Shown here one piece after another: positions 1 through 21,639 of a stretch of 64,000 nucleotides of DNA. The DNA lies in assembly GCA_026936335.1 (NCBI GenBank), contig JAPMXV010000035.1, positions 1 through 64,000 of the forward strand, in the 5' to 3' direction. Within the stretch, counting starts at the first letter, position 1. Each line of letters begins with the position of its first letter. Source of the stretch: Mantamonas sphyraenae STR306. Lineage: Eukaryota; Protista; CRuMs. A model generated the notes under the pieces. That model was not told the origin of the DNA, made no database searches, and saw nothing but the letters and a program-made list of their open reading frames with translations. The translations under genes were made by a program, and so were the position numbers.

Positions 1-34
<34 letters not shown>

Positions 35-195
35 CCCTAACCCTAACCCTAACCCTAACCCTAACCCTAACCCTAACCCTAACCCTAACCCTAACCCTAA
101 CCCTAACCCTAACCCTAACCCTAACCTAACCCTAACCCTAACCCTAACCCTAACCCTAACCCTAACCCTAACCCTAACCCTAATCCTAACCGTAA
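1..195 (+). repeat. Telomeric repeat (CCCTAA)n = (TTAGGG)n on the minus strand; left chromosome end
   Basis: About 30 tandem TAACCC units with two variant units, degenerating at ~181-215 (taatcctaaccgtaatccc...gccctaaat). Confidence 0.98.
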
Positions 196-488
196 TCCCG
201 CATCCGAAGCCCTAAATGTGGTATGATATCATGGATTATGTGATGAGTCCGGTCTATGTATGGTGAGTTGTGCTTGTGTCTGCTGGCGGGGTGGCTGAGT
301 TGGGTGGTGACATGGGGCAGTGGGGAATGGGTGTGAGTGGAAATGACGCTGGTGAGTGGTCGTCGTCCTGCAAGGCCGTGCAGTCAGCACTTGCGCATCC
401 GCCTTCAACCAAAAGTGTCACCAACACCCACAACACCCTCCACCAGGCCAACACAATCCACATACACTCCACTACCACCACCACCACC

Positions 489-3400
489 ATGGACAAAGAC
501 TACTCAAGCACTCCGAAGCAACAACACACATCCAACACCTACCCAGCGTGCGTTCTGCCTTCCACTCCGTTTTCTGACTGCCCGCTTCTCCCGCTTCCTT
601 GCCCCCTCCATGCCTCTGTCGCTTCCCTGCACTCCTCCCCGGCATCTTCACTTCCCCATCACCACCGCCGCTGCCTTTTCCGCTCTTCTCCGATCCCCTC
701 TCCCCTGTCACTGCCCTCCCCGTTGCCAGTTTCCCCGTCTGCCAATCTTCTCCGTTTTCCCCTCTCTGCTCGTTCCAGCCTCCCTTCACCCCCGCTTCTG
801 CTCTGACGGCGTCCGTTCCGCCTTCCGCTCACCGTTCCTACTTCACCTTGCCCCTGCCCGTCCTCTCCACAGCTACGGGTACATGGTCCCTCCCATGGCT
901 GCCCAAGCGTTTCCGAACATGCTGCCCGCCTCTGGCGTACAAAACCCGTACCAGCACCCACAACCACCCATCATCTGGGTGCCTGTCAACACCTACCCGC
1001 AGCAGCACTCCGCATATGCTCATCAGGGCCACCCATACTACGCCTACCCTCCTCCGCCGCCTCCTCAGCCGCGACAAACCGCCCAGATGCACTTCGCTCA
1101 GCCTCCGTCCCACCCTCCGCCTGCTCAACCCACCACTAACCACAACCGCGTCCCCAAACGCATCAGCCCTGCCTTTGTCGGGATCTCACGGACCACATCC
1201 ACCACCACATCGTCCTCCTCCTCCCACCAGGCCACACGGCAGACCGGAGACAGCGACGACGACGACGCAGACGAGGACACACACACACATGACACCGGCG
1301 ACGTGGAAGACCTGATGTTCCTGAACTTCGGCCACCGTGAACCACGGTCAATCTCCAATAGCTCAGAGTGGATGACCAGCTCAGGGATGGAGGCGTACGA
1401 CGAAGACGGCGACGCAGACGATGCAACCCAGCAGCACGTGGATGACGAGATGGAAACTCAGGGCACACTCAGCTTCGCAGACACTGGTGATGCCATGGAT
1501 GAGGAGAACATGCCGCAAGACGACAGCGACGATGACGCAGACGACATAGAGCAGGAGGAATGGCAGCCGGGTCGCACAAATAGAGGCAGCGCACAACGGC
1601 CCAGAGGCCACATCACCCGTCATGCTGGTCCACAAACGATCAAAGGCGGCGGACAGAGCAGGCTCGGGTTCACGGCTGGCAGTGTCACCGAGACAGGAAC
1701 ATCGAGCACACGGGCAAGGGGGGCCATGAACGGAGACAACGGCGCAGGGAAGAAAGCAGGCGTGGACAAGACGAACAAGTTGCCAGATGGTGTTGTGCGC
1801 AAAGGGTGGACAGGGGGACACAGTGACGAGCGCAGCCAGAGCAACAGGAAGGAGCACACGGCACTGCTGAAGCACATGCACACCCTGGCCACCGAGCATC
1901 CCATCGACGACATCACCGACCTCATGACCCTGCAGGCGCGTGTTGTGGTCTGCCATGGCACCCTGAACACGCTGGTCCGACAGATTCAGCTTGCACTGGG
2001 CAACATTCCCCTCTCCCAGGGCGACATGGCCCTCTGCCTCACCCTTCTCGGCCTTGACATGGATCAACAGGTGTGCGGAATTTCCATTGCCCACGCTGGT
2101 CTGGCCATGGGTGTGACAAAGTCCTGGTTGAAGGTGTGCTGGCTGGAGGAGCCACACGACCACGGCGACCCCAACTACGCCCTCCTCCACCTGCTCATGA
2201 CAGAGATGGACACTCTTGGCGACAGTCCCCATCCCACCACCTGGAAGGAGCACAAGCAGACCCAGTTGTCGCTGCAGGAAGCACGACGCCCTGCTGACAA
2301 CGACAGCGACCCACACTGGACACAATGCGACTACGACCACCACCTCACCACTACCAAGGTGGACAAGTGGCATCCTGATTCTGTGCGCAGTGGTTGGATC
2401 AATGGTCTCAGCGACGAGCGTGGCAGCTGCACGGCGCGGGAGTTCCAGACGCTGCTGGCACACATGAAGGCACGCGCAGCCAAGCACCCTCGCCATCAGC
2501 ATGCACACGAGAACCATGCACTGCGTGAGCTGATCAACAACGGCAGCCTGAACTCCCTGCTGCGACACATCATCCTGGCGCTGGGCAACGTTGGCGTGCC
2601 CCCTGTCGACCTGGCCTTCTTTGTCCGCCTCCTCAGACCACGCCTCACCTACCAGCAGGTGAAAAATGCCATCAGCGACACCCTCATCCGCGGCGTCACC
2701 TCCCTCTCCCTCAAGATCGCCTGGCTCGACAACCCCAAACCCAGCGACGCCACACTGCACACCCTCCTCCACACCCTCATCGACCGCATCACACCCCACA
2801 TCAACACCCGGCCCACCACCACCGACGCCGTCAGCAACCTTGACATCCCCGAGCTTTTCCTGCCTGAGCCCACAGAGGAGGAGATGGCCGTGGAGGATGG
2901 ACTGCCAGATGGCGTTGTGCGCAGTGGCTGGACAAACTGGCGCAAGAGCGTGCGCAGCCACAGCAACAAGAAGGAGCACACGGCACTGCTGAGACACATG
3001 CACACTCTGGCCAACGAGCATCCCATCAACGACATCCCCGACCTCATGACCCTGCAGGCGCGTGTCGTGGTCTGCCATGGCACCCTGACCACGCTCGTCC
3101 GACAGATTCAGCTCGCTCTGGGCAACATTCCCCTCTCCCAGGGCGACATGGCCTTCTGCCTCACCCTCTTCGGCTGTGATATGGATCGACATGCATGCAG
3201 CCATGCCATTATCCACGCTGGTCTGGCCATGGGTGTGACCAAGGCTGGGTTGAAGGTGTGCTGGATGGAGGAGCCACATGACCACGGCGAGCCCAACTAC
3301 GCCCTCCTCCACTTGCTCATGACAGAGATGGACACTCTCGGCAACAGACCCCATCCCACCACCTGGAAGGAGGACAAGCAGACCCAGCTGTGGCTGCAGA

Positions 3401-5211
3401 AAGCACGACGCCCTGCTGACAATGACAGCGACCCACACTGGACTCAATCCGACTACGACCACCAACTCACCACCACCGAGGTGGACAAGTGGTATCCCGA
3501 GTCTGCGCGCAGTGGCTGGAGCAGAGCCAATCACGGCGACGAGCGTGGCAGCTGCACGGCGCGGGAGTTCCAGACGCTGCTGGCACACATGAAGGCACGC
3601 GCAGCCAAGCACCCCCGCCATCAGCACGCACACGAGAACCAGGCACTGCGTGAGCTGATCATCAACGGCAGCAAGATGTCCCTTGTGCGACACATCATCC
3701 TGGCGCTGGGCAACGTTGGCGTGCCACCTGTCGACCTGGCCTTCTTTGTCCGCCTCCTCAGGCCACGCCTCACGTACCAGCAGGTGCAAAGTGCCATCAG
3801 CCTCACCCTCACCCGCGGCGTCACCTCCCTCTCCCTCAAGATCGCCTGGCTCGACAACCCCAAACCCAGCGACGCCACACTGCACACCCTCCTCCACACC
3901 CTCATCGACCGCATCAAACCCCAAATCACCACCCGTCCCACCACCGTTGACGCAGTCAATGCCCTCGACATCCCCGAGCTTGTTCTTCCCGAGCCCACAC
4001 AGGAGGAGATGATGGCCGTGGAGGATGGACTGCCAGATGGCGTTGTGCGCATTGGCTGGACGTGCTGGCGTAAGAGCGAGCGCATGCACAGCAACAAGAA
4101 GGAGCACACGTCACTGCTGAACCACATTCACACTGTGGCCAACGAGCATCCCATCGACGACATCCCCGACCTCATGACCCTGCAGGCGCGTGTTGTAGTC
4201 TGCCATGGCACCCTGTTAACGCTGATCCGACAGATTCAGCTCGCTCTGGGCAACAGTCCCCTCTCCCAGGGCGACATGGCCTTCTTCCTCACCCTTCTCG
4301 GCCATGACATGGATCAAATGGCGTGCAGTGCTGCCATCCCCCACGCTGGTCTGGCCATGGGTGTCACAAAGGCTGGGTTGAAGGTGTGCTGGCTGGAGGA
4401 GCCACACGACCACGGCGACCCCAACTACGCCCTCCTCCACCTCCTCATGACTGAGATGGATTCTCTTGGCGACAGGCCCCATCCCACCACCTGGAAGGAG
4501 CACAAGCAGACCCAGCTGTGGCTGCAGAAAGCACGACGCCCTGCTGACAACAACAGCGACCCACACTGGACACAATGCGACTACGACCACCACCTCACCA
4601 CCACCAAGGTGGACAAGTGGCATCCTGAGTCTGTACGCAGTGGCTGGTGCAGTGCCTCGCCCAGCGACGAGCGTGGCAGCTGCACGGCGCGGGAGTTCCA
4701 GACGCTGCTGGCACACACGAAGGCACGCGCAGCCAAGTACCCTCGCCATCAGTACGCACACGAGTACCATGCATTGCGTGAGCTGATCCGCAACGGCAGC
4801 ACGGTGTCCCTGCTGCGACACATCATCCTGGCGCTGGGCAATGTTGGCGTGCCGCCTGTCGATCTGGCCTTCTTTGCCCGTCTCCTCAGGCCAAACCTCA
4901 CCTATCAGAAGGTTCAACCTGCCATCAGCAAAACCCTCAGCCGCGGCGTCACCTCCCTCTCCCTCAAGATCGCCTGGCTCGACAACCCCAAACCCAGCGA
5001 CGCCACACTGCACACCCTCCTCCACACCCTCATCGACCGCATCACACCTCACATCACCACCCGCCCCACCACCACCGCACTCGTCAACGCCTACCCCATC
5101 CCCCCCTTCACCCTCCCCAAGCGCAAAGACCCTTCCTCCTCCTCCTCCTCCTCCTCCTCCTCCTCCTCCTCCTCCTCCTCCTCCTCCTCCAAACGCCAAC
5201 GCCTCGAATGA
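489..5211 (+). CDS. Subtelomeric tandem-repeat protein (P/Q-rich and acidic N-terminus, 3 x ~375-aa repeats, poly-Ser, C-terminal basic NLS-like motif); unknown family
   Basis: ATG 489 (MDKDYSS...), phase-2 GT-AG intron 548-872 joins it in frame to ORF 337..5211; repeats start at 1780, 2902, 4030; ends PKRKDP-(S)n-KRQRLE*. Confidence 0.85.
1780..5118 (+). repeat. Three direct tandem coding repeats of 1122/1128/~1090 bp
   Basis: Each unit begins (c/t)tgccagatgg(t/c)gttgtgcgc = LPDGVVR; long identical DNA stretches between units. Confidence 0.97.
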
Positions 5212-5241
5212 ACCACCCTTTCATTCACACATCCCTCCCAC

Positions 5242-5430
5242 TCACCCTCCCCTCCCCACCCACCCAACCACCCTCTCCATCACCTCATCCGGCAGTGTCA
5301 CCCACCCTTCCCACCCTCCCTCCTCCACATACTCCTCCATCCCTCCACACGCAAACATCGCCTCCCTCTCCTCCCCATTCATCACCAACGCCACCGTTTC
5401 CATCCATGGCTTCGCACCCTCTTCTCCACG
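5242..5430 (-). pseudogene. 3' remnant of a gene ending in an F-box-like motif, paralogous to the middle of the neighbouring LRR-ankyrin gene
   Basis: ALVMNGEEREAMFACGGMEEY...WVTLPDEVMERVVGW* vs ALVMNASEREVMFEIGGMDGY...WWTLPDEVMDRVVGW at ~6907-7030 (+); no convincing upstream coding sequence. Confidence 0.65.
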
Positions 5431-5631: not shown

Positions 5632-7486
5632 ATGTCTGACGCTGCAATCAAGATGTTGTTGGAGAGAGGGGCAAGTGCAGATACCTTGATCCCTTTCATG
5701 CGAGTGGATGAGACCACCGAGGTTGGTACCCCTTTCCCTTTTTGTCTTAGTTTGCCGTTTTGAGAGAGGGTTGTTGACGAAAGCGAAGCTGTGAGGGCCC
5801 ACTTGAAGCTTGTGGACATCCTTTGTGTCCATTCACCACGTAACACGGCCACTTACACAACTAGAAACTCTCATTCACGCGAATCAGCTCTCCTTTCCGG
5901 AACAATATGATGAACTTGAACTGGAAATTCTCCAGCGGTATTTCCAAGCCGAGTCCCACGCCCCGCACATCACAAAGATCAATCTGATGGGCCTGCCATT
6001 GGAAAAGGGCACCGCACAATTGCTGGCAAAGGTCATCAAGGGGTCAAACATAATCTCCGAGCTGGCTGTGGGCGACGAGTGGTACTCGCTGGGGTCGAAG
6101 GACATTGTTGATCTTTCCGCAGCAATAGGGGAAAGCACGTCCATGCGCGACGTCAAAATCTGGACAGATTTGACCAAGGAAGCAGCAGAGAGCATTGGTG
6201 TAGCCATTGCCAAGAGCAGCACACTTGAGAAGCTTGTTTTGGAGCTGGAAGAGAACAACGACGCGCTGGTGAGGCACATCTGCGCAGGAGTCCAAGAAAG
6301 TTCATCCTTCCGATCGCTGAGGATGGTCGGTCCGGGTATGCTCACCGATGCAGCCATGGAAGCCGTGGCTGAGGCACTCGAACGGTGCCAATCGTTGGAG
6401 GTTTTGGAATTTGTCGCCATCGAACCGCTTGAACCAGACGCAGTCACGGTGTTGGCTCGTGGTGTCTCCTGCACGAAGAGTTTGATCTCCTTCGTGGCTG
6501 AGACCGGCGAGGGACTTTCGCCAGAGGACATGGAGGTGCTGGAAGATGCATTGCATGCGAACCGATCATGCATTGAGTTTGTCCTGCTGGATGAACTGAG
6601 TGAAGCGGCAGAAGGGTCTCTGCTGCGCAACCAGCGTGCAGCCGAGGCATTTGTGTTGGCTGCTGCAAAAGGCCAAGTGGAAGTGATGCAACGGTGGCTG
6701 GACTGGGGCGTGAGCATCAACACGAATCCAGATATGCAAACTGCCATCAATGCGGCTGTGAAGAACAAAAGGTTCTCAGCTGTGGCGTGGCTCATCCAAA
6801 AAGGCGCGCACTGCCCAGAGAACGTCCTCGCGAGTGTACGTAGCGAGGGATGGAACCGATCTCATCACTGGGCATGGGACACAAAGGAGGACGAGGCACT
6901 GGAAGCTGCATTGGTCATGAATGCGAGCGAGCGGGAGGTGATGTTTGAGATCGGCGGGATGGATGGGTATGAGGCAACCGCAGAGTGGTGGACTCTGCCA
7001 GATGAGGTGATGGACAGAGTGGTGGGGTGGTTGATGGACAGCGATCCATCGCACCATGAGGTCTCTTGGTGTTGGCGGCACTTTGACATGGTCAAAGAGC
7101 ACGTGCCAGACATGTTTCCGGGAATGCTGTTTGCAGCGTCTAGGAATGGTTATGAAGACGGAGTACGACAGTTGCTGGATGCAGGCATGGACGCAAACAT
7201 CTTGAACAAGTTTGGGTGGACGCCGCTGATGGTGGCAGCCGAGGAGGGTCACTTGCGCTGTGTGCAAAGTTTGCTGGCCGGCGGAGCAGACGTGCACGTC
7301 AAGAGGCCGAACGGGAGGACAGCGTTGACCTCGGCTGTGGTTGAGAAGCATGCGGATGTGGTGGCGGCGCTGGTGATGGCAGGTGCACATCCCGAGTCTG
7401 TTGAAGCCGAACTGGAACGGTACGGGACTGACGATGTGCGCAAGGCACTGTTGGATCCACAGGAATGGACGGGTCGGGAAGGATGA
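5632..7486 (+). CDS. RNI-like LRR + ankyrin repeat protein with internal F-box-like motif
   Basis: ATG 5632, phase-1 intron ~5726-5864; LRR-like units (SSTLEKLVL, CQSLEVLEF), ANK repeats (GWTPLMVAAEEGHLRCVQSLLAGGADV, GRTALTSA). Confidence 0.85.
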
Positions 7487-7559
7487 ACCCCGCAACCAAC
7501 AAAAGGTGGTGATTGAGTACATCCAGGCACACGCAACAAGCCTTCCCCCCCCCCCCCCC

Positions 7560-7640
7560 CTCCTCCTCCTCCCCCAAACGCCAACGCCTCGAATGAACCC
7601 ATACATTCATTCCCACACCCTTCCCACACCTCCTCCATCA
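7560..7640 (+). repeat. Second copy of the 3' end of the tandem-repeat gene (SSSS-KRQRLE* plus 3' flank)
   Basis: ccaaacgccaacgcctcgaatgaacc identical at 5189-5214 and 7574-7599, both preceded by TCC repeats and followed by similar cattc/cacacc flanks. Confidence 0.85.
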
Positions 7641-10006: not shown

Positions 10007-13000
10007 TCACACCTCTGCCTCTTCCTCCTCCTCATCCCCCTCTCCATCTTCCACGTCATCCAATCGCTTCTTCCTCTTCTTCTTCTTCCCTTCCTTTTCA
10101 CGTCGCTCCATCTTGCGACTCTTTCTGCGCTCCCGCTTCTCCTGCGCGAGTCGTTCCCGCTCTTCCTCCAGCGCTTGCGGTCCCTTTGTCTCCGGTGCAC
10201 GCAGGTCAAACAGCCCAATCAACGCACTCTGCGCACCCTTCTCCTCCGACGACGCCGCCGTCGTCCTTCCTCCTTCTTCCGTCCTCTCTTCCTCATCCTC
10301 GCCCAGCAACCCGCGGTAAAACTCCGCAATGTCGTCCAGGTGGTCTTGATCCACTCCCTCCACCACGTCCAGTTCGATCAGATCCCCTGTTTCCTCCATC
10401 GCCTGCTTGCCCATCGTCAGTCGCCTCTTGCTCAACGTCGCCGATGTTCCTGGCGATGCGTTTGCACGACGCACCGTCGCGCCACGCTGCCTGGGCGTCA
10501 AAGTCATACCCCGCTTCACGCGCACGCTTCCCACCTTTCCCGCTGCCACGCCCGTGCCCTGCCCTCCGTTGTTCATGTACACGCTCGCGCCACGCTGCCT
10601 GGGCGTCAACGTCATTCCGCGCTTCATACGCACGCTTCCCGTCCACGGCTTGTCCGTCGCCGTCTCCGTCTCTCCCTGCACCACTCCCGCCGCCGCCACC
10701 TCCTCCTCTTCGTCCTCCTCCAAAATGGACTGAATGCGCGCAAACATCTCCGCGTCCATCTCCTCCGTGTTCATGATCATGTCTGCCACCTCGTGCACGT
10801 CCTGGTCGCGAAGCAGGCCTTCGTTGCCGTTCACAAGCGTGTTGTATCGCATGCGGGTCGTGTTCACTGCCTTGCGCTCCGTACGCTCGATCTGTTGGTG
10901 CAGCTGCTTTCGCTTCTCCCTGCTGATCGTCTGCACACGCCTGCTGCGGAAGTGGTAGTACAGGCCCACCGCCAGCGTGATCACGTTGAACGTAATCGCC
11001 ACCACCGCAAGCACAATCACTGCCTCCAAACTCGCACGCCCGCCCACAGTCGCAGGGTCTAGCTTGTCGCCCCAAAACAAAAGGCCCGTCAACAGAAGGA
11101 ACAACGAACTCATGAGACTCGCAAACTCCAGGATGTTCGCCCCTCCCGTCGCAAAGGGCCTCGCGTACAGCTGAAACTCCAGACAAAACAGGATCATCAG
11201 GAACGCAGCCACCACCTGGAACACCACGCTCTCTCCAAAGATCACACGGCACATGAACACCAGCCCTTGCGCAGCACAAGCACAACTTCCCAGAAGTAAA
11301 ACTTCTTCTTGTAGCGCAGGTACACAGAGCCCATGCGCCGCTCAAGTCGCTCGGTTTCCAGCCGGTCCCGGTTTGCGTACAGCCGCCAGAACAGGAAACC
11401 CGGAATGCCCAGGCCATACACAATCACAGCCGCGACCGTCACAGGCAGAGCCGCGTACCAATCCGAGTTGAAGCATTCGATGCTCGGCGAAGCGTCCAGC
11501 GAAAACGTCCCATCTGCCTGCTCAGTGCACACAAACATCTCCAGCGCCGTCGGTGTCACCAGCGCATACACAAGCGCCATAAAAAGCATGATTGCGTTGT
11601 ACGTCGAGTCCCAGTTCTTCATCCAGATGGCCCTAAAGTCGTAGTTGAACATGGGGAACACGCTGTCGTCCGCCCCCAGCCGGCGCTGCTTCACGCGCTT
11701 GCGCCACATTCGGTACTCGATGCGAAGTGCATCCATCGCAGACACCATCGCCTGCACCATGCACAGCGTCGCCACCATAATCCATGGCGCAACAAGCTTC
11801 AGGTACCACTTGTCCCAGTACGAAACGTCCACCACGCACTCCGGCGACGTGATTTCCACGTTGAAGTTGAACGTCGAAATCAAATCAAACAACACAACCA
11901 CCTGGTCCGGCCACTGCAGCTCGAACGAACCCAAGAGCGCCATCAGCTGCAGGTTGTTTGTCGCAATGCCCAGGAAACTCAGCTTCTTTGCCTCGGCACC
12001 AAACTTGCGCACGCCAAATGCAAACAGCACCAGCATCGACATGGCAATCGAAAACACAAGCGTCGAGTCGTCTCCGCACGGCCTGCACGTGTTCTGGATC
12101 TTGTAGTACCGCTTTGCGCACAATCCACACAGCCGACCCGTGTATCCGGTCCCGCACGTGGCTTCGCTCGACCCTCCAGGACACGCCTCCGCATTCGTGC
12201 ACTTCAGGAATTGCAGTCCCGCCTGTCCGCCCGAAGTCGCCCAGAATCCGGCCGCCGCCACAGGCTGCGCCGCTCCTCCGTCACATTTTCCTCCTGCAGG
12301 ACACGGTTGGCACGCTGTGTTTGCCTCCGCCGCCGCCGGCCTGAAGAAGCCCACGTTGCACGAGCAGTCGCCCAGCGCCGTGCTCTTTGCAGGTGCTGCT
12401 GACCCAGCCGGGCACACGGTGCACGCGTCTTCGTTCGACGAGTTGGTGTACGAGTTGCTCGCGCAGTCCGTGCACACAAAGTCGACCGTGCGCGCTGTCC
12501 CTGCCGGACAGTCTGCATAGATCGACACAGTCAACGGTTCCGCCAGCACGTCTTCCGTCCCCTGGTACTTGATCACCAGCGAGTACTGCTGGGCGCGCGC
12601 CACCTGGTACGTAAACGTGTACTGCCCGTTGTTGATGCCCAACTGCGTGTCCGACGGCGTAACAACTACCTGAGCGCCGTCCACCACCGCCGTGAAACGC
12701 ACCTGAAAGTCTCCCACCGTTCCCGTCGAAGTCAGCTTGTTGTCAAAAGCATCGATCGCCTGCAGCACAAACTGGTGTGCTCCCGACACGCGCAGCTCGC
12801 TCGGCGTATTCTTTACGCTTACCAGGCCTGGCCCGCTCACGTTGCACTTTCGCGGCAACACAGCTCCAGGCACAACCTGCAACGACAGCGAGCCCCCAGC
12901 CACGTACTCGATGTTATCCACAAACACGCGCACAGAGTACCTCCCCGCTCGCGTCTGCCCAAACACCTCGTTGTGAACCACACTCCACGGCTGCATCTTC

Positions 13001-16000
13001 TCTTCACCGCTCTCCAACAGACTCCTCCCTCCGGCTCCGGCCGCTGTCACGGCCGCTGTTTGCTGGTAAGCAAACTCGACGCGCACTCGACCCGTCGCAA
13101 GATCCAGCGCGTTGCCGAAGCGGTCAAACGTAGATACCACAACCGTGCGAGTCCCTCCTGCCACCAGGTCCGTGTCCAGCCCGCTCACCGTCGTGCCCGG
13201 TACGTGCGGCACTGGCTCGGGCAACATCGTCAACACCATCGGCGAGTTCTGCACAGGGTTCGTCGGCGTGTTGAACGACACCTGGATGCTGTACGATCCG
13301 GCCACCGTGTACGTGTGGTTCATCTTGTACACCCCCGTGCCCAAGTCGTACACTGCCACAGGCAACACCTTGCCGTCCACCAACGCACGTGCGCGGAATG
13401 TCTCCCCGCCCACCGTCCGCTTGTTTCCAAACTGGTCCCGAGCTTGCACATACGCCTCCCCCGTCTTGCCAGCCTCCACGCTGTACGTCACCGCTTGCAT
13501 CCATCTCTCCTCACGCGGCACGGCCACCAAGTCCACAAACGACTGCGCCGCGCGCGCCAAGTCCGGCGACACCACAAGTTGGCCCGCAGTTCCCACCTGC
13601 TCAAACGTACCTTTGATGTCCGCCTCTACAGTCACTGTGTATCTTCCCGCAACCGTTAGATCGGTCGCCACCATGTTGTACACGCCCACCGTCGTTTGCG
13701 CCGTTGTCGTCAACGTCTTTGTCACGTTCCTGCTCGGCAGCGAGTACCGCACCCGGAACACATCGGTGCCCTCCGTGCGCACATTCCCGTATGCATCGCG
13801 AGACACCAACGACACCATCTGCGCTTCAGTTGCCCCTGCCACCAGCCCGTTCGACAGTTGATTCCCAACGATCACGCTCATCGTTGCGTTCAACTCGTTG
13901 TTCACAATCGCCACTTCCAGCCCATTGTTTGGTGCGCGCCCAAGCACACCCATTGGGTCAAACTTCCCGTCTGGAGGCCCCTCTCCACGGAAATCCATCG
14001 CCACGCGTGCGCTGCCAACCTTTGGCCACGACCACCGCATCGTCTCCACCACCGCGCCATTCACCACAGAGCGCACCGCGGCCACGAAAAAGGTCGTTTC
14101 TGCGCCCGTTCCACCACCTATCGCTGGTACAGTCACCCTCAGCTGCGTCGCCATGCCGCTCACCGCCTCGATCGAGTTGCCAAACTGATCCCGGATCTCC
14201 ACCTCGTGCACGTTTTCCACACCGGCCACCGCCACCGCCGTTCCCACTGTAGGCACTGAACGGTACCCACTCCACCTCTGCGTAAACTCCGCCGTGCTCG
14301 GCACCCCTGGAAGCATGCGAAACGTGACCGGCGTGTCTGCAAACTCGGTGACCACGCCAGTGGCCCCGTCACGTACGCTCACACTCAGGTCGTACACGCC
14401 GGCCACCCTCACGCGCATTGGAAGCAGGTAGTTTGACGTCGTGCTGCCCGTCGTGATTGTCTCGTTCACCTCCGTCATTGCTGCATTTCGTGCAATTGCC
14501 CGAAACACAATCTGGCCGTTCGCGCGAAATGGGTTCCCAAACAGATCGCCCACTGTCACGTTCAGCGTCACCAGTGCGTCCACACTCCTGTTCACCTGCG
14601 TATTCAGGTGCAACACGCTGTGGCCGCCGTCAGCGCGCGCACCAACAACCTCGATCGTCTGCTGCCGCACCACAATTGCCGCATTCATCAAAGGATAGAA
14701 CAAGCCTTGCACCATGTTGTACTCGCCCACTTGCGTCAGCGTCGTGTTTCCTTGTAGCAGGCCGCTCCCGTCCACCGTTACGTTGATCGCCGTTGCCGTC
14801 TGTGCCGCCAGCCCGTTCGACGTGCGATATGGCCGCTGAAAAGGAACCACTCCTCCGTTGGTGTACTTGACCACGTTTCCATACCGGTCGCGCATCCTCG
14901 CAAGCCCGCCGATTGGCGAACCTGCGCTCCACTCCAGCTTCCCTGCGTCCCCACCGCCTCCTCCACCACCAGCACCACCAGGATTGCTAAACCGCAGGCT
15001 CATCTCCGTCGTCGTTTCGTTTGCCACGCCTGGTGCAACCGTCACGTTCACCCAGTTGCCCTTCTCCGGCGGTCCGGCAATGTTCCCGCCCGACGGCGGC
15101 CCCAGCGTAAAGTTCAACCGGTACTCGCCCGCCCGTCGCACCGGGATCTCAAATCCAAACACTGCATTGCCCGCCGAAATAAACTTGGTCTCGTTGAAAA
15201 ACACGCGCACCACCGTCCCGTCGTTCCAATCCACAAACGAGATCAGCGGTTGACTCTCCTGCGCCTCCTCCATCAGCACGCGGTTCCCAAATACGTCTCG
15301 TGACACCACCCATAGGTTCACTGTTTGGTCTGCCGTCACCTCGCGCGTCACATTCAGCACTTCAGACTGTTTCGCGTTGGACAAGCCCGTGCTGCGAAAC
15401 TCCAGGTTCGCCTCCACGCCCGTGTACACCCCGCCAAGGTAGACCCGCACTGTGTATGCTCCACGGCGCCATGCCTTGTAGAACAAACGCTGCCCTGCAA
15501 TCGACACTCCAACCAGCCCTGGGTCCGATTCAACCCAAAACTCAAACTCGCTCGGCCCACTCTCTACCCCCACAGAGAACAACGCCCCCGGAGGTGCTCG
15601 GTTACCAAATGCGTCCCTAGCTTTGCACAGAAGCACCGAGGACGTCTGGTTTGCCGCAAGCGTCGTGTTTCCTCCCGTCACCGACGATAGCAAAGCCACA
15701 GCCGGGCCAGGAACCACGCGCACCGAGTCTGCCAGCGTCGCCACAACCTCCACCCCATGCCGGATGGTCATCACTATGTACTCGCTCCCTTGGGGCTCGT
15801 CCGTGCGTGCCGTGTCGCTCAACGTCGAACGTGTCAGGTTGCATCGCAGACCAAGAAGACCTGCTTGCGGCCCGACAACTCGGTACCACTTGCAGTCAGG
15901 CTCGTTCGCCAGCTGGCCCGTAAAATCCTCCTCCACCGCAACGCTAGAGTTTGTCACGTTATTGCCAAACTCGTCACGTAGCTGCAACAGCACAGGCGTG

Positions 16001-19000
16001 AACGGAACTCCTGCCGTCGCCTCGCGCTCAATCTGCATCACAAGCGTCTGACTCGGCACATATGGCGCCGCGTTGCAATGCAACGTCTTGCCACTCACAC
16101 TCAGTGCCCCCACTGGTTCAAACACCCCTGCGCTCGTGTTGCGCATCACACGCACAGTGTGGTCCAACGTACGGTTCACGCGATACTTCAACACAACCAC
16201 ATCCTGGCCAAGCTCCACGCTCGTGGCCACGTACGCTCCGGAAAATACATGCACGTGGCCGTCGCTCACGCGTGTCACCTCAAGCACAAGGCGGGAAATG
16301 ACCAGCGTGCTCTCTGCCGTCCCTGCGCTCACGCTCAACGCGTTGCCGTACGAATCCCGAGGTACGAGCACCACAAAGTTCTCTACACCAACTTCGCATC
16401 GATCCGTGCCACCGCCCGTCACCAACCACTCGCGCTCGTCACTCGTTTCCGCTTGGATCGTCACCGGCACGCTCCCCTGCTGCGGCGTCTGCCCATCCAG
16501 CTCAAACACCAGATTCACACCCGTCACAGCTCGCGTGATGTTCACACGGTACAAAAGCACGCCCTCACCCATGTCGCTAACCGTATAGTTCACAGGCGCC
16601 CCGCTGCTCAACTTGACCGCAGGCATCCCTGGTGCTCCCTGCGTCGTGTACCGCCGGTTGCCAAACTTGTCCCGCCACACCAGCTCCGCCTCGATCAACT
16701 CTCCCGCGTCGCGCGTCAGCGGCAGGTTGTAGTACTGCATCGTCGACGTGTTCACCTGCGCCGCCGCAGGCACAACACGGAAGAACATGGGGTAGCCCAC
16801 CATGTACACCGTCGTTCCGTTCACCGTTGTTTGTGCCTTCATCTTCCACGCTCCCGTGCTGTTCAGCGGCACATAAGACAGACGCACCGTGCCGTTTGCC
16901 AACCCCTGCACCTGTGGCGTCACCTGGAAATACTCCGTTGCTACAGAGTCGTTCACCGGTGTGCCAGGGAGCACAGGCGTAAAGCGATACAGCTCGGGCA
17001 CAAACCGGTTCGCAAGCGCGATGTATGACGACGCACTCGCCAGCCTGTTCCCATACTTGTCTCGCAACACAAGCTTCGTTTCCACCTCTGTCCCTGCAAC
17101 GGTTTCGCCGATGGCAGGTGCCAACGCGGCACTCGTCTCTGCGGCCGCGATCTCCAACGGCGCCACGATCACAGGCAGCGTTCCGTTCTGCACCTCTGTG
17201 CCGTTGATCACAATCCGCAGCATGTAGTTGCCCGCAACAGTCCTCTTGAATCCGGCCACAGCCACGCCCTCGCCTGCATCATTCTGCGCCCCGTGGTTGA
17301 TCCCGCCGTCCAGTGTCCGCTTCCCAGCCACACCCACCAGCTCTGCATATGTGTTTGCAGGCAGCTCAGACGGGTGTTGCAGCGACACCACGTTTCCAAA
17401 CGCGTCACGCAGATGCACAACAAATGGGTTCAGCTCCGCTCCTGCACGCGCCACAGGAGGCACCTCGCTCACGTTGCTGTACACATACGATGTGCTGCCC
17501 ACAGCCACGTTGGGACTCACCTGCACCGACGGCAGGTTTACAGGCACCACCGAGCCACCCATCTTCAGCACCACCGTGTGCAGGCCTGTTTTCAACAGCA
17601 CCGGTGCCGGAAACACCACGTGTCCGTTGTCCTGCGTGCCAGACACAATCACCTGCTCGCTCGCACTCGTCACCTCCAGCTTTGGGTTCAGCGACGTAAA
17701 CGTCGACCCAGAAACAGGTGCATCCAGCGGGTTTCCGTAGATGTCCCGCAGCTGGAAGCGTGCGACGCCTCCCACCGCCACCCCTGCGATGCTGTTCGGT
17801 GCCAGCGTGCTCACCACGCTCGTCAGGGTTTCGTTCACCGCACCCACAATCGTTTGCACTGTCACGATGTCCACCAGCGACTCCACCAACAGCCCAACCT
17901 TGTGTGTCCCTGTGGTTGTCGGCAGTTGGTATTGCAGCCGGTATCGACGCGGCACCACCGACGACAGCGTCTCGATGGCCACAATCGGCAGTGTCTGCGT
18001 CCACTGCGTCTTCTCCTGACTCACGTTAAACAGTGCCACTTCTACATACTCAGGGAGCGATGTGTTGCACTGGCCGTAGCTGTTGTGCGCAACCACATCA
18101 AACTGCCCCACCGAGCCCACCGTGCCCTGCTGCGTCGGCTCTCCAAACACAGTGTACGTGCCGCAAAACAGGTCCAGGTTGTTCACACGCACGTCCACCG
18201 TTTGGCTTGTGTTTGTCATGTTGCCTCCAATGCACACCCCACTACCCGGCAGTTGCATCGTCGTGTTCCAAACAAGCACCTGCGCGCTGTTTGTCAGCGT
18301 CACACGCCCGTCCGTCACATGAAACAGCACAGACACTGCAGGCGTGTTCGGCGGCGTGTTCACATGTCTCTTGTACGGCTCGTCCACAATCACAGGCATC
18401 GAAACGCCACCCACACGCATCCATACGCGCACTCGCCCTTCTTGCAGATTCACTTCCGTCACAAGGCCCTCTTGGCACGAAGCGCTTGCCCCAACCACAA
18501 CCACAAAGCCTGTTTGGTTGCTCGTTGCCACCAGAGTGGAACGCACAGCATACTCCTTCAGCGATTGATGCCCAAACCCCATCACCGCCACTTCTCCGAG
18601 TGCGCGCTCCGTTCCGTTGATGCGCAGGCGCAGTTGCCCCGTGGTTACGCCGTTGTTGGTGATACTCTGCACATCCCAATCCTTTGTTCGCGACGCAGGC
18701 ACAGGGTTGCCCAGCGGCAGGTTTCCAGACGCTGGATCATACACCAGCGAAAGCAGCTTATACGGCCTCTCCAGCGCAGGCGGCCACGCGTAGATCATCG
18801 CCGGTGTTTCCGTCTTGACAATCAACGGGCCTTTGATCGCGCTGTATGGGAAGGTCGGCTGCGCGAGCGCGCGCACAAATGGCGCGCCTACAGCCTTGAA
18901 GTTGTTGCCAAACTGACTGAGGGTTGTCAGAGAGAAATTGCTCACCAGCACAGAGTTGATCGACACCAGCACCATCTTTCCGTCCGATACCACGTTCACG

Positions 19001-21639
19001 TGGCTTTCCTTGTCCTTGTACATGTTTGCGTCCGCGAGGCTCACGCACGAGCTGCTCCGAGAAACCTCCACGTTCACGGCGCTGGTGTTGATGCTCTCCT
19101 GAAAACACACCGATCCCGACGTCGATCCCGTGTGTTGGATCACCACTTGTGCCACCAAGTCGCTGTCCTCCTCGCAACCGTTTGCGAAAAGGCCCACCGT
19201 CAGTGAATTGCGGTACGGCAGGTAAAACTCCATGTCCACCGCGCCCAGATCGCTGCCCATGGTCATGCAACTGTCAGACCCTGGTGATTGCAAGTAGCTC
19301 ACCGAGTTGTTCGTCACCTTGCGCCACGCATCCAGGGACGAGCTCGGGGTCACGCCCAAAAGCTGCAGAAAGTACAGCCGGTCGAACGGATCGAGCGACA
19401 ACTGTTCCGTGGGCCCGCTCACGGGATTTCCGCCGTGCGCAGTGTTTGTCAGAAACACTCTTGCACTTGCAACGGGTCGCGAATCCGCATGATGCATGCG
19501 CCTGTGGCGTACGCCGTGGATCGCAAGCTTGAAATCCGCGCGTACGGCCCTGACAGTCCCCCAGCTTGCATGGCTTCAAACGTGTTGCCACTAAAATCAA
19601 TCCTAAACACTGTCTTGCTGGTGTCGTCCAAATTGACCAGATTCGACGTCTTGTTTCCTGCAGGCGTACGCACCTGCCAGTACGCGTGGTACTTGTTGCT
19701 GATCACACACTGAACACGGAAAAAGACGCCATACAGACCATTCTTGCTCGTACGCACACCAATTTCCACTAACGGATCCGGACTTATGCTCGGTGCCCGT
19801 CGGCATGTTCCTTACGTTGATCCGCAGCGTCGCCGATTTCACTGCGTCCGGGCCGAATTGGACGTAAACACCCGCCGGGTCGGTGAACCCTGCAGTGTTC
19901 TTGAGCTTCTGCGGGTCTCCAGCGTCGATCTGGAGTCGTGCTTGGTCGCCGCCCAGCGCTGTGATGGCCCTGGCAGTAAACGCACGGTTCCACGAGTCCG
20001 AGTTCGTCATGGGCATCTTCCAAACCTCGTCCTCCCCATACAAAGACAAAGAGTCCACGTGCGCTCCCATCAACGATCCAGACCCGACGTTGATGGCGCT
20101 GAAGCGCGCCACACGTGCCCTTTGCACATTTGCCAAGCCCGAGCCCGCCAAGGTGAACCCCACCGAGCCCTTGTCATAGCTCCCTGCCGACCCGGTGTAC
20201 TCCAACAACACTTGCATGTTCTCGTTCGGGCCCACAATCACGGAAAAGTGTTGGCCACGCGCCACGAGGCGCAGGTACAGCCCGTCCGCGGGCGCCACGT
20301 ACCTACAGTTCGACATGTAGTCGTCCATGTTGTGTGTCACCTTTCCCAGACACACGAGAAAGTCGGGGTTGGTTCCAGTGTCACCCAGCTTCCAGATACG
20401 AGCCCCAATGGCATCCACCGCCGCTGTCTGCACCGACATCTGATTGCGCACAAACACCTGTGCCTTGTCCGCCCGCGCCGCTTTGCCTCCGTTTCCCGCG
20501 GAGAACTGCACCACTGCCATCACATCCGTCAGCTCTCCGTCACCAAAAATCATGCTCGCCAATGCTGCGCCTCCGCTCTGGCACTGAACGCCGATCTCTC
20601 CGTCTACGTTGTCAATCGCGAAATCAGACCCCACACGTACAAGCAAGCCCGTAAACCCGCCTGCGACTTGCGAGGTAAAATTCTGATCCACAATGTAATC
20701 CCGTTGCACTGCGATGCACTCGCGTGTCAGCGGTCGGTTACAGGGTTACACGGCGGTTTCTCCGCCTGAAACCGCCGAGCGGGCGTTTCGCGCGCAAAGA
20801 AACGCCCCGCGTCAACGCTTCCCCCGTCTGCCACTGCACACACACCTACCTGTTGCATATGGGAACTGTGGGGCTTGTGGAGTGGTACTGTATGCCACGT
20901 TTGTCACGTGCGTGTCCACATCAAAGAAGCGCAGCCAGTGGTAATAGTCCGGAAAGGTGTACCCGTCCAGGGGAACGCGCATCACACGCACGTTTTCAAA
21001 GTAAAGCTCAAGCACCTTGGTGCTTCCCAGACCCGTAAACGCAATGGACACATTGGCTGGCCCCGACGGGCTCGCAGGCACGTTTGTCCCGTTGTAGTCC
21101 ACCAGCGACGATACAATACGCGGTACCGGATTTGCTCCTGCCTCCGCAAAGGCCACTGTGTTGTCCTTCCACCGAAACTCCACCATCACCGAGTCGTTAA
21201 ACATGCGGAGCTCAAAACCTTGGTTCGGCCACGAAAGCGCTGCACCCTCGATCTTGGGGTACAACGTGAAGCTGATCATCCCACCTGTAAAGTTTGTCGG
21301 CGTAAGAAGCATCGAGGTGTCCGAGTTCTTGGCCCTCACCAAACAGTATCCCATGTGAGAGGCCAGCTGAAACTGCCCTCCACTCTGAGGCATCAGCCAC
21401 TTTGGCACATCCGAGCCTTGTGTGAAACGGCCGCATGTGCTGTTGTCGCAAGCCTTGTATGGCGAGAGCAGAGCCTGACACCCGCCCGCGCAATCCGCTG
21501 TCCCGTTTCCCTGTGGAGGGCACATGCCGCCGCTTCCTTGTTGTCCTTGAGCCTGTACGCCGCCACAAAGGCTTAGGCTCACCGCAAGGAGTGCCGTGCA
21601 CACTACAATCAGGTTCCGTGTGTGGCTCACCACTTTCAT
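10007..21639 (-). CDS. Giant (~3,800 aa) membrane protein: signal peptide, beta-sandwich domains, many filamin/Ig-like repeats, Cys-rich (GCC2/GCC3-like) region, multi-TM domain, cytoplasmic tail
   Basis: Four to five ORFs joined by one intron (~20710-20849) and three apparent frameshifts (~19790, ~19475, ~11265); recurring RDxxGN motif; CPAG/C-x2-C repeats; YFWEVVLVLRK and YARPF TM motifs. Confidence 0.8.

Follow-up and report, generated by a model that had tools for sequence, protein, structure and literature searches.

Hypervariable patches on a constant frame: candidate DNA readers encoded by a subtelomeric gene family of Mantamonas sphyraenae

The left end of contig C35 of the deep-branching CRuMs protist Mantamonas sphyraenae STR306 (JAPMXV010000035.1, 375,077 nucleotides [nt]) carries a gene, the first one inside the telomere, whose protein contains repeated modules that differ from one another mainly at a few fixed places. 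What keeps these places different, and what might they recognize? We analyzed positions 1 to 64,000 of the contig, here called the window, together with the genome assembly (25.06 Mb, 78 contigs). A preliminary description of the window had proposed an undescribed modular binder diversified by selection and subtelomeric recombination. Every peptide and codon that it quoted was found in the units of the window. It had placed the feature at 1780-5118; the repeat units do lie there, but the gene is larger, spanning 489-5211 with an intron.

Three units share one open frame. They begin at 1780, 2902, and 4030 and measure 1122, 1128, and approximately 1086 nt. They had been called nearly identical, which is too strong, as pairwise identity is only 88 to 90% for nucleotides and 83% for amino acids. 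Each unit consists of two homologous halves, A and B, approximately 35% identical, so that the protein of the window has six modules, with repeat periods of approximately 197 and 375 amino acids. The whole protein is predicted to have 1465 amino acids (by arithmetic, exons 1 and 2).

Variation was scored in 52 aligned units of approximately 400, drawn from 30 loci and biased toward those most like unit 1 of the window. Variability peaked at unit residues 12, 63, 97, 101, 104, and 105 in A and at 207-211, 257-258, 296, and 300 in B, which correspond to the three patches noticed at the outset; an additional selected spot in B lies at residues 242-247. The 52 A modules displayed 47 different signatures of their third core helix (helix 3). 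Sites were then chosen on the three window units only and scored in the 46 other units. They were hypervariable there too, with mean nucleotide diversities of 0.44 and 0.52 at codon positions 1 and 2, versus 0.087 and 0.055 elsewhere, indicating that the three patches noticed in the window are not random. Two details needed correction. In the loop after GW of module A, residue 12 is hypervariable, but the rest of the apparent variation (K..GHSD versus S..WRKS) is mostly a fixed signature of first versus later modules. The residue preceding NGS in B (253), listed as variable, is nearly invariant across the family.

A codon model with a fixed tree identified 175 sites under purifying selection and 20 sites with more nonsynonymous than synonymous change (dN>dS), the strongest being 101 and 296. 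Because recombination is extreme, such a test is unsafe: distances between neighboring segments are uncorrelated, and linkage decays within approximately 40 nt. We therefore used a tree-free diversity test. Four-fold sites and the intron, taken as neutral, gave diversities of 0.126 and 0.096, respectively. Diversity of at least 0.5 at both positions 1 and 2 was reached by seven codons (12, 63, 101, 104, 209, 258, and 296), compared with 0.47 expected even if all codons were neutral. Third-position diversity was only 0.24 to 0.34 at 101, 296, and 300, and amino acid variants far outnumber synonymous ones, as at site 296, with 13 amino acids from 14 codons. Diversity at positions 1 and 2 is higher than neutrality allows, and neither relaxed constraint nor a hotspot of mutation can account for the patches, whereas diversifying selection can. 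Thus, the frame of the module is under purifying selection and the patches are under diversifying selection, and very short-range ectopic recombination reshuffles the variable residues, in line with the constant scaffold, the selection, and the subtelomeric recombination that had been proposed.

We then searched the genome for related genes. The unit yielded 406 candidates, and none of the 111 that were scored (81 to 87% identity) contained an internal stop. The N-terminal region yielded 201 candidates (133 scored, 78 to 86% identity), a half-module profile 743, and the 5′ noncoding part of the cassette 166. The family comprises approximately 200 two-exon genes, roughly 3% of the genome (200 times 3.9 kb of 25 Mb), and provides the first gene inside nearly every chromosome end. 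From the search tables, we counted by hand at least 65 left and approximately 61 right contig ends (78 contigs) with a copy, the distance of right-end copies to the contig end being confirmed for 16 loci with known contig extent. The genome paper gives 132 telomere-bearing ends (PMC10492846). Every end copy reads away from the telomere, with its 5′ end distal. Most genes have two units (four modules), whereas that of the window has three. Some ends carry head-to-tail arrays of cassettes of approximately 3.9 kb, whose junctions lie near the equivalent of position 386; the 3′ edge differs from copy to copy, the flanks switching into different neighbors. Neither poly-A nor telomere repeats were found at the junctions inspected. 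An early frameshift or stop occurs in 4 of 25 genes, and some of these may be assembly errors.

The units of L007 (right end of C52), L017 (left end of C74), and L018 (right end of C73) are near-identical, less than 2% apart versus approximately 20% for others, showing that whole units were copied recently between ends. The same modules also form an internal, nontelomeric cluster in convergent orientation at 75634-103051 of C29 (751,365 nt), where open frames are far longer (1902, 2172, and 3224 amino acids). The available part of the genome paper does not describe the family and reports that repeats were masked ahead of gene prediction (PMC10492846), which may have hidden it as an "unclassified repeat." Our literature search did not find a description of it either.

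Is the family expressed? The two exons and the intron (Table 1) were first predicted from the sequence. All 18 testable paralogues retain the donor and acceptor of the intron. Of 41 intron indels, 40 have lengths that are not multiples of three, whereas 29 of 38 indels in the coding N-terminal region are in frame. Four public read runs were aligned to positions 300-2900, with reads accepted at 88% likeness. The splice joint 547->873 reached a depth of 2401 in run X4 only, in which depth dropped to 279 within the intron and to zero at 300-386. In runs X1 and X2, the intron was covered and the joint was absent. X4 is not labeled as RNA, but its joint and drop in depth indicate that it behaves as an RNA run. 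The family is thus transcribed and spliced; given the 88% likeness, expression is assigned to the family and not to the window copy itself. X5, a biofilm metagenome from another study, also contains fragments of the family, among them a variant of helix 3, so the family is not an assembly artifact.

The core of the module is predicted, with moderate support, to be winged-helix-like, with three helices and a hairpin over residues 58-126; with the alignment of 52 units, support for this fold was consistent, though below threshold. The same model, equally moderately supported, places the variable residues on the exposed face of helix 3, at the start of helix 1, and in the N-terminal loop. Helix 3 is amphipathic, its variable face lying opposite the hydrophobic one, which agrees with the one-sided helical spacing noted at the outset. 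A Cro/POU-type all-helical helix-turn-helix was dropped, as a hairpin follows helix 3 in the model. The structure search of the ESM Atlas gave weak winged-helix rows (TM score of at most 0.54 by target). Foldseek gave no significant match in PDB or BFVD; its top rows were Roquin ROQ domains (E 0.5, nonsignificant), of which the module has neither the fold nor the sequence features.

Other searches, in which exons and parts were used singly as queries rather than the spliced product, and whose blanks concern organisms other than M. sphyraenae, were also negative. The family matched no profile in Pfam or PHROGs, with no winged-helix family above the cutoff, and module sequences had no match above the cutoff in PDB. 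Unit and full-length queries found nothing among 5.8 billion proteins, nor did a profile search of 1.84 billion representatives, a feature search of the ESM Atlas, or searches of viral and metagenome contigs. Judging from these comparisons, the family appears to be undescribed and without a homolog in any database searched, as the preliminary description had supposed. Nor did we encounter the findings that it had named as fatal to its proposal, namely scattered or buried variable sites, no excess of nonsynonymous change at them, no transcript, or a clear match to a well-known family.

In winged helices, helix 3, the start of helix 1, and the N-terminal loop usually make the major-groove, backbone, and arm contacts, so the fold, moderately supported as it is, points to DNA as the ligand. 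On balance, we consider it probable that the proteins act in the nucleus as DNA binders with sequence specificity and form a repertoire peculiar to this lineage. Helix 3 of each module would read a few base pairs, and a protein with four to six modules would recognize one long site. As no catalytic domain was seen in the protein, the low-complexity, disordered N-terminal region is a candidate for recruiting effectors, which might be silencing or chromatin machinery. Its basic stretch at approximately 1560-1660, the most divergent part of the region among paralogues (approximately 80% nucleotide identity, several sites at 2 bits or more), is possibly a further variable nucleic acid-binding arm. 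The C-terminal tail, PKRK-(Ser)n-KRQR, is kept in 21 of 21 intact genes examined and resembles a bipartite nuclear localization signal. Ectopic gene conversion among ends keeps the frame uniform and shuffles the patches. Selection would favor a broad repertoire, the most plausible driver being foreign DNA that keeps changing, such as viruses or mobile elements; this is the weakest step of the proposal. However, the genome search revealed no retroelement-type reverse transcriptase (RT) or rve integrase, so that no target for a defense against foreign DNA is in view. With two Spo11/Top6A-like genes in the genome, a meiotic role, in pairing or hotspot choice, is also conceivable. A covarying cis target upstream of the gene was rejected, as 280-880 contains no hypervariable cis motif.

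The exposed helix might instead contact proteins of viruses or intracellular bacteria, or escape their inhibitors, in the manner of leucine-rich repeat (LRR) or ankyrin immune repertoires. The structure matches include the winged helices of ESCRT-II, cullins, and Pol III, which are protein-contact modules, the A core is neutral to acidic, and a gene of LRR-ankyrin type adjoins the cassette. Nevertheless, the variable positions lack the aromatics typical of protein-binding paratopes, the three patches coincide with DNA-contact positions, and the tail suggests a nuclear protein, making such receptors unlikely.

We see less room still for a selfish subtelomeric cassette, Y′-like or HeT-A-like, whose protein would help it spread or protect it by recognizing other copies or the ends of chromosomes, with variation reflecting conflict among copies or with the host. 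Its place and orientation, fixed at nearly every end, and the head-to-tail arrays would fit such an element. The conserved spliceosomal intron and the plain junctions do not, nor does the absence of a nuclease or helicase domain in the protein, of rve integrase and of any RT match other than telomerase in the genome, and of a hypervariable cis motif upstream. A retroelement origin was rejected on similar grounds: RT, gag, and helicase were not found, the junctions lack poly-A and telomere repeats, and the intron is present.

Sequence-specific binding of foreign or host transcripts, following a ROQ-, LOTUS-, or PPR-like logic, is hinted at by the nonsignificant Roquin rows, and we give it a small chance beside DNA binding. 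Finally, variation without adaptive specificity, through relaxed constraint, mutation hotspots, or a mutator templated like a diversity-generating retroelement, is very improbable and already largely refuted: third positions are raised at some variable codons (mean of 0.40 at the sites picked in advance) and NNT/NNC codons at 101, 296, and 300 superficially recall adenine mutagenesis, but diversity at positions 1 and 2 lies above the neutral limit, amino acid variants predominate, adenines show no special variability, and TERT is the sole RT match in the genome; the last two results exclude the mutator.

Table 1. Coordinates of the telomere, the cassette, and the parts of its gene in the window.
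Feature	Position	Strand	Remarks
Telomere, (TAACCC)n	1..195	.	32.5 copies, TTAGGG-type
Subtelomeric gene cassette	386..5300	+	~4.9 kb here, ~3.9 kb in two-unit members
Exon 1	489..547	+	ATG at 489, 19 codons + 2 nt; equal length in 18 of 18 testable paralogues
Intron	548..872	+	325 nt, GT..AG, phase 2, pyrimidine-rich
Exon 2	873..5211	+	Open until stop at 5209-5211
Low-complexity N-terminal region	883..1779	+	~300 amino acids; Pro/Gln/Tyr-rich, then Ser/Thr, acidic, then basic
Module A1	1780..2220	+	Predicted winged-helix-like core at unit residues 58-126
Hypervariable residue 12, loop after GW	1813..1815	+	16 amino acids among 46 other units
Hypervariable residue 63, start of core helix 1 of A	1966..1968	+	
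Core helix 3 of A, residues 96-105, putative recognition helix	2065..2094	+	Variable 97, 100, 101, 104, 105
Conserved A-B linker	2221..2370	+	One predicted helix
Module B1	2371..2787	+	
Hypervariable loop 207-211 of B	2398..2412	+	Length also varies
Variable residues 257-258, start of core helix 1 of B	2548..2553	+	
Core helix 3 of B, residues 291-306, putative recognition helix	2650..2697	+	Variable 292, 295, 296, 300
Unit 2	2902..4029	+	A2 2902-3342, B2 3493-3912
Unit 3	4030..5115	+	A3 4030-4470, B3 4621-5040
C-terminal tail	5116..5208	+	PKRK, poly-Ser spacer of variable length, KRQR

Directly behind the cassette, an open reading frame of 558 amino acids (5810-7486, plus strand) begins with an LRR-like part and carries ankyrin repeats toward its C terminus (Pfam Ank_2, E 1e-25). 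It is followed by a remnant of the 3′ end of a cassette (7541-7636, plus strand; 82% identical to 5156-5250), apparently the trace of a second, overwritten copy. In inverted orientation, the 3′ flank of the cassette (5257-5391) matches coding sequence of the ankyrin gene (7033-6908) at 72% identity, which suggests that the flank came from a subtelomeric gene of opposite orientation. Farther inside, a large frame of 2751 amino acids (11242-19497, minus strand) is surface-receptor-like: its beta-rich domains are repeated, one stretch is Cys-rich, and several membrane-like segments lie in the C-terminal part. Elsewhere in the genome, telomerase (RVT_1 and Telomerase_RBD in one frame of 963 amino acids; C3, 7371-8639, minus strand) lies approximately 7 to 8 kb from a telomere, just behind two cassettes. 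A frame of 1048 amino acids gives a single weak match to the protein-primed polymerase family PF03175 (26.3 bits; C42, 660604-661026).

How does the family compare with known systems? KRAB-zinc-finger and PRDM9 arrays show positive selection on DNA-contacting residues (PMC3126818). The Mantamonas proteins share with KRAB/C2H2 arrays and PRDM9 the tandem modules of variable number, the constant frame, the large set of paralogues, and an N-terminal effector-like region, and positive selection is likewise concentrated on the face of the putative recognition helix. Unlike C2H2 fingers, the module is helical and approximately 140 amino acids long, without the 28-residue C-x2-C...H-x3-H motif or a Pfam match. 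There is no KRAB, SCAN, or SET domain, and the genes are subtelomeric, with at least one per chromosome end, and belong to a protist; their DNA binding is predicted. The predicted topology of three helices and a hairpin, with the variable face on the third helix, resembles that of winged-helix DNA-binding domains (Fur, MarR, ArgR, MecI, forkhead, and those of Hop2 and Cdc6). As in TAL effectors and PPR proteins, near-identical repeats carry polar hypervariable residues at fixed positions, yet those proteins are solenoids of 34- to 35-residue repeats reading one base each, whereas the family has few large globular modules with approximately eight variable residues each. Membership in the TALE, PPR, or LRR solenoids was rejected, as the repeat periods are far from their 24 to 35 residues and Pfam gave no match. 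Zinc-finger, TALE, PPR, LRR, RT, helicase, and Mediator signatures were all absent from the family protein.

Trypanosome RHS (PMC7563717) and Candida albicans TLO/Med2 (PMC5908203) are expanded subtelomeric families that are nuclear or chromatin related. The Mantamonas family is likewise expanded, recombining, and subtelomeric, but it shares neither sequence similarity nor a domain with them, and its placement is far more uniform. In RHS and TLO/Med2, we are aware of no repeated module with a focal hypervariable helix. Like yeast Y′ and Drosophila HeT-A, as we know them, the cassette occupies most ends in a fixed orientation and forms tandem arrays; unlike these elements, it has an intron and lacks helicase, gag, RT, and a poly-A junction. 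To our knowledge, the large diversified repertoires of DNA readers described so far are chiefly those of animal zinc fingers and bacterial TAL effectors. More tentatively, the family may represent a new class of eukaryotic DNA readers, modular and built on a winged-helix-like scaffold, in which residues of helix 3, helix 1, and the loop would specify bases through a readable code. Its approximately 400 natural module variants at chromosome ends, reshuffled by gene conversion, could then serve as an adaptive antiviral or chromosome-identity repertoire and be reused for engineering. If so, a lineage branching near the base of Amorphea would have arrived at this strategy independently, using another fold, and hundreds of natural variants would be at hand from which the recognition code could be read directly.
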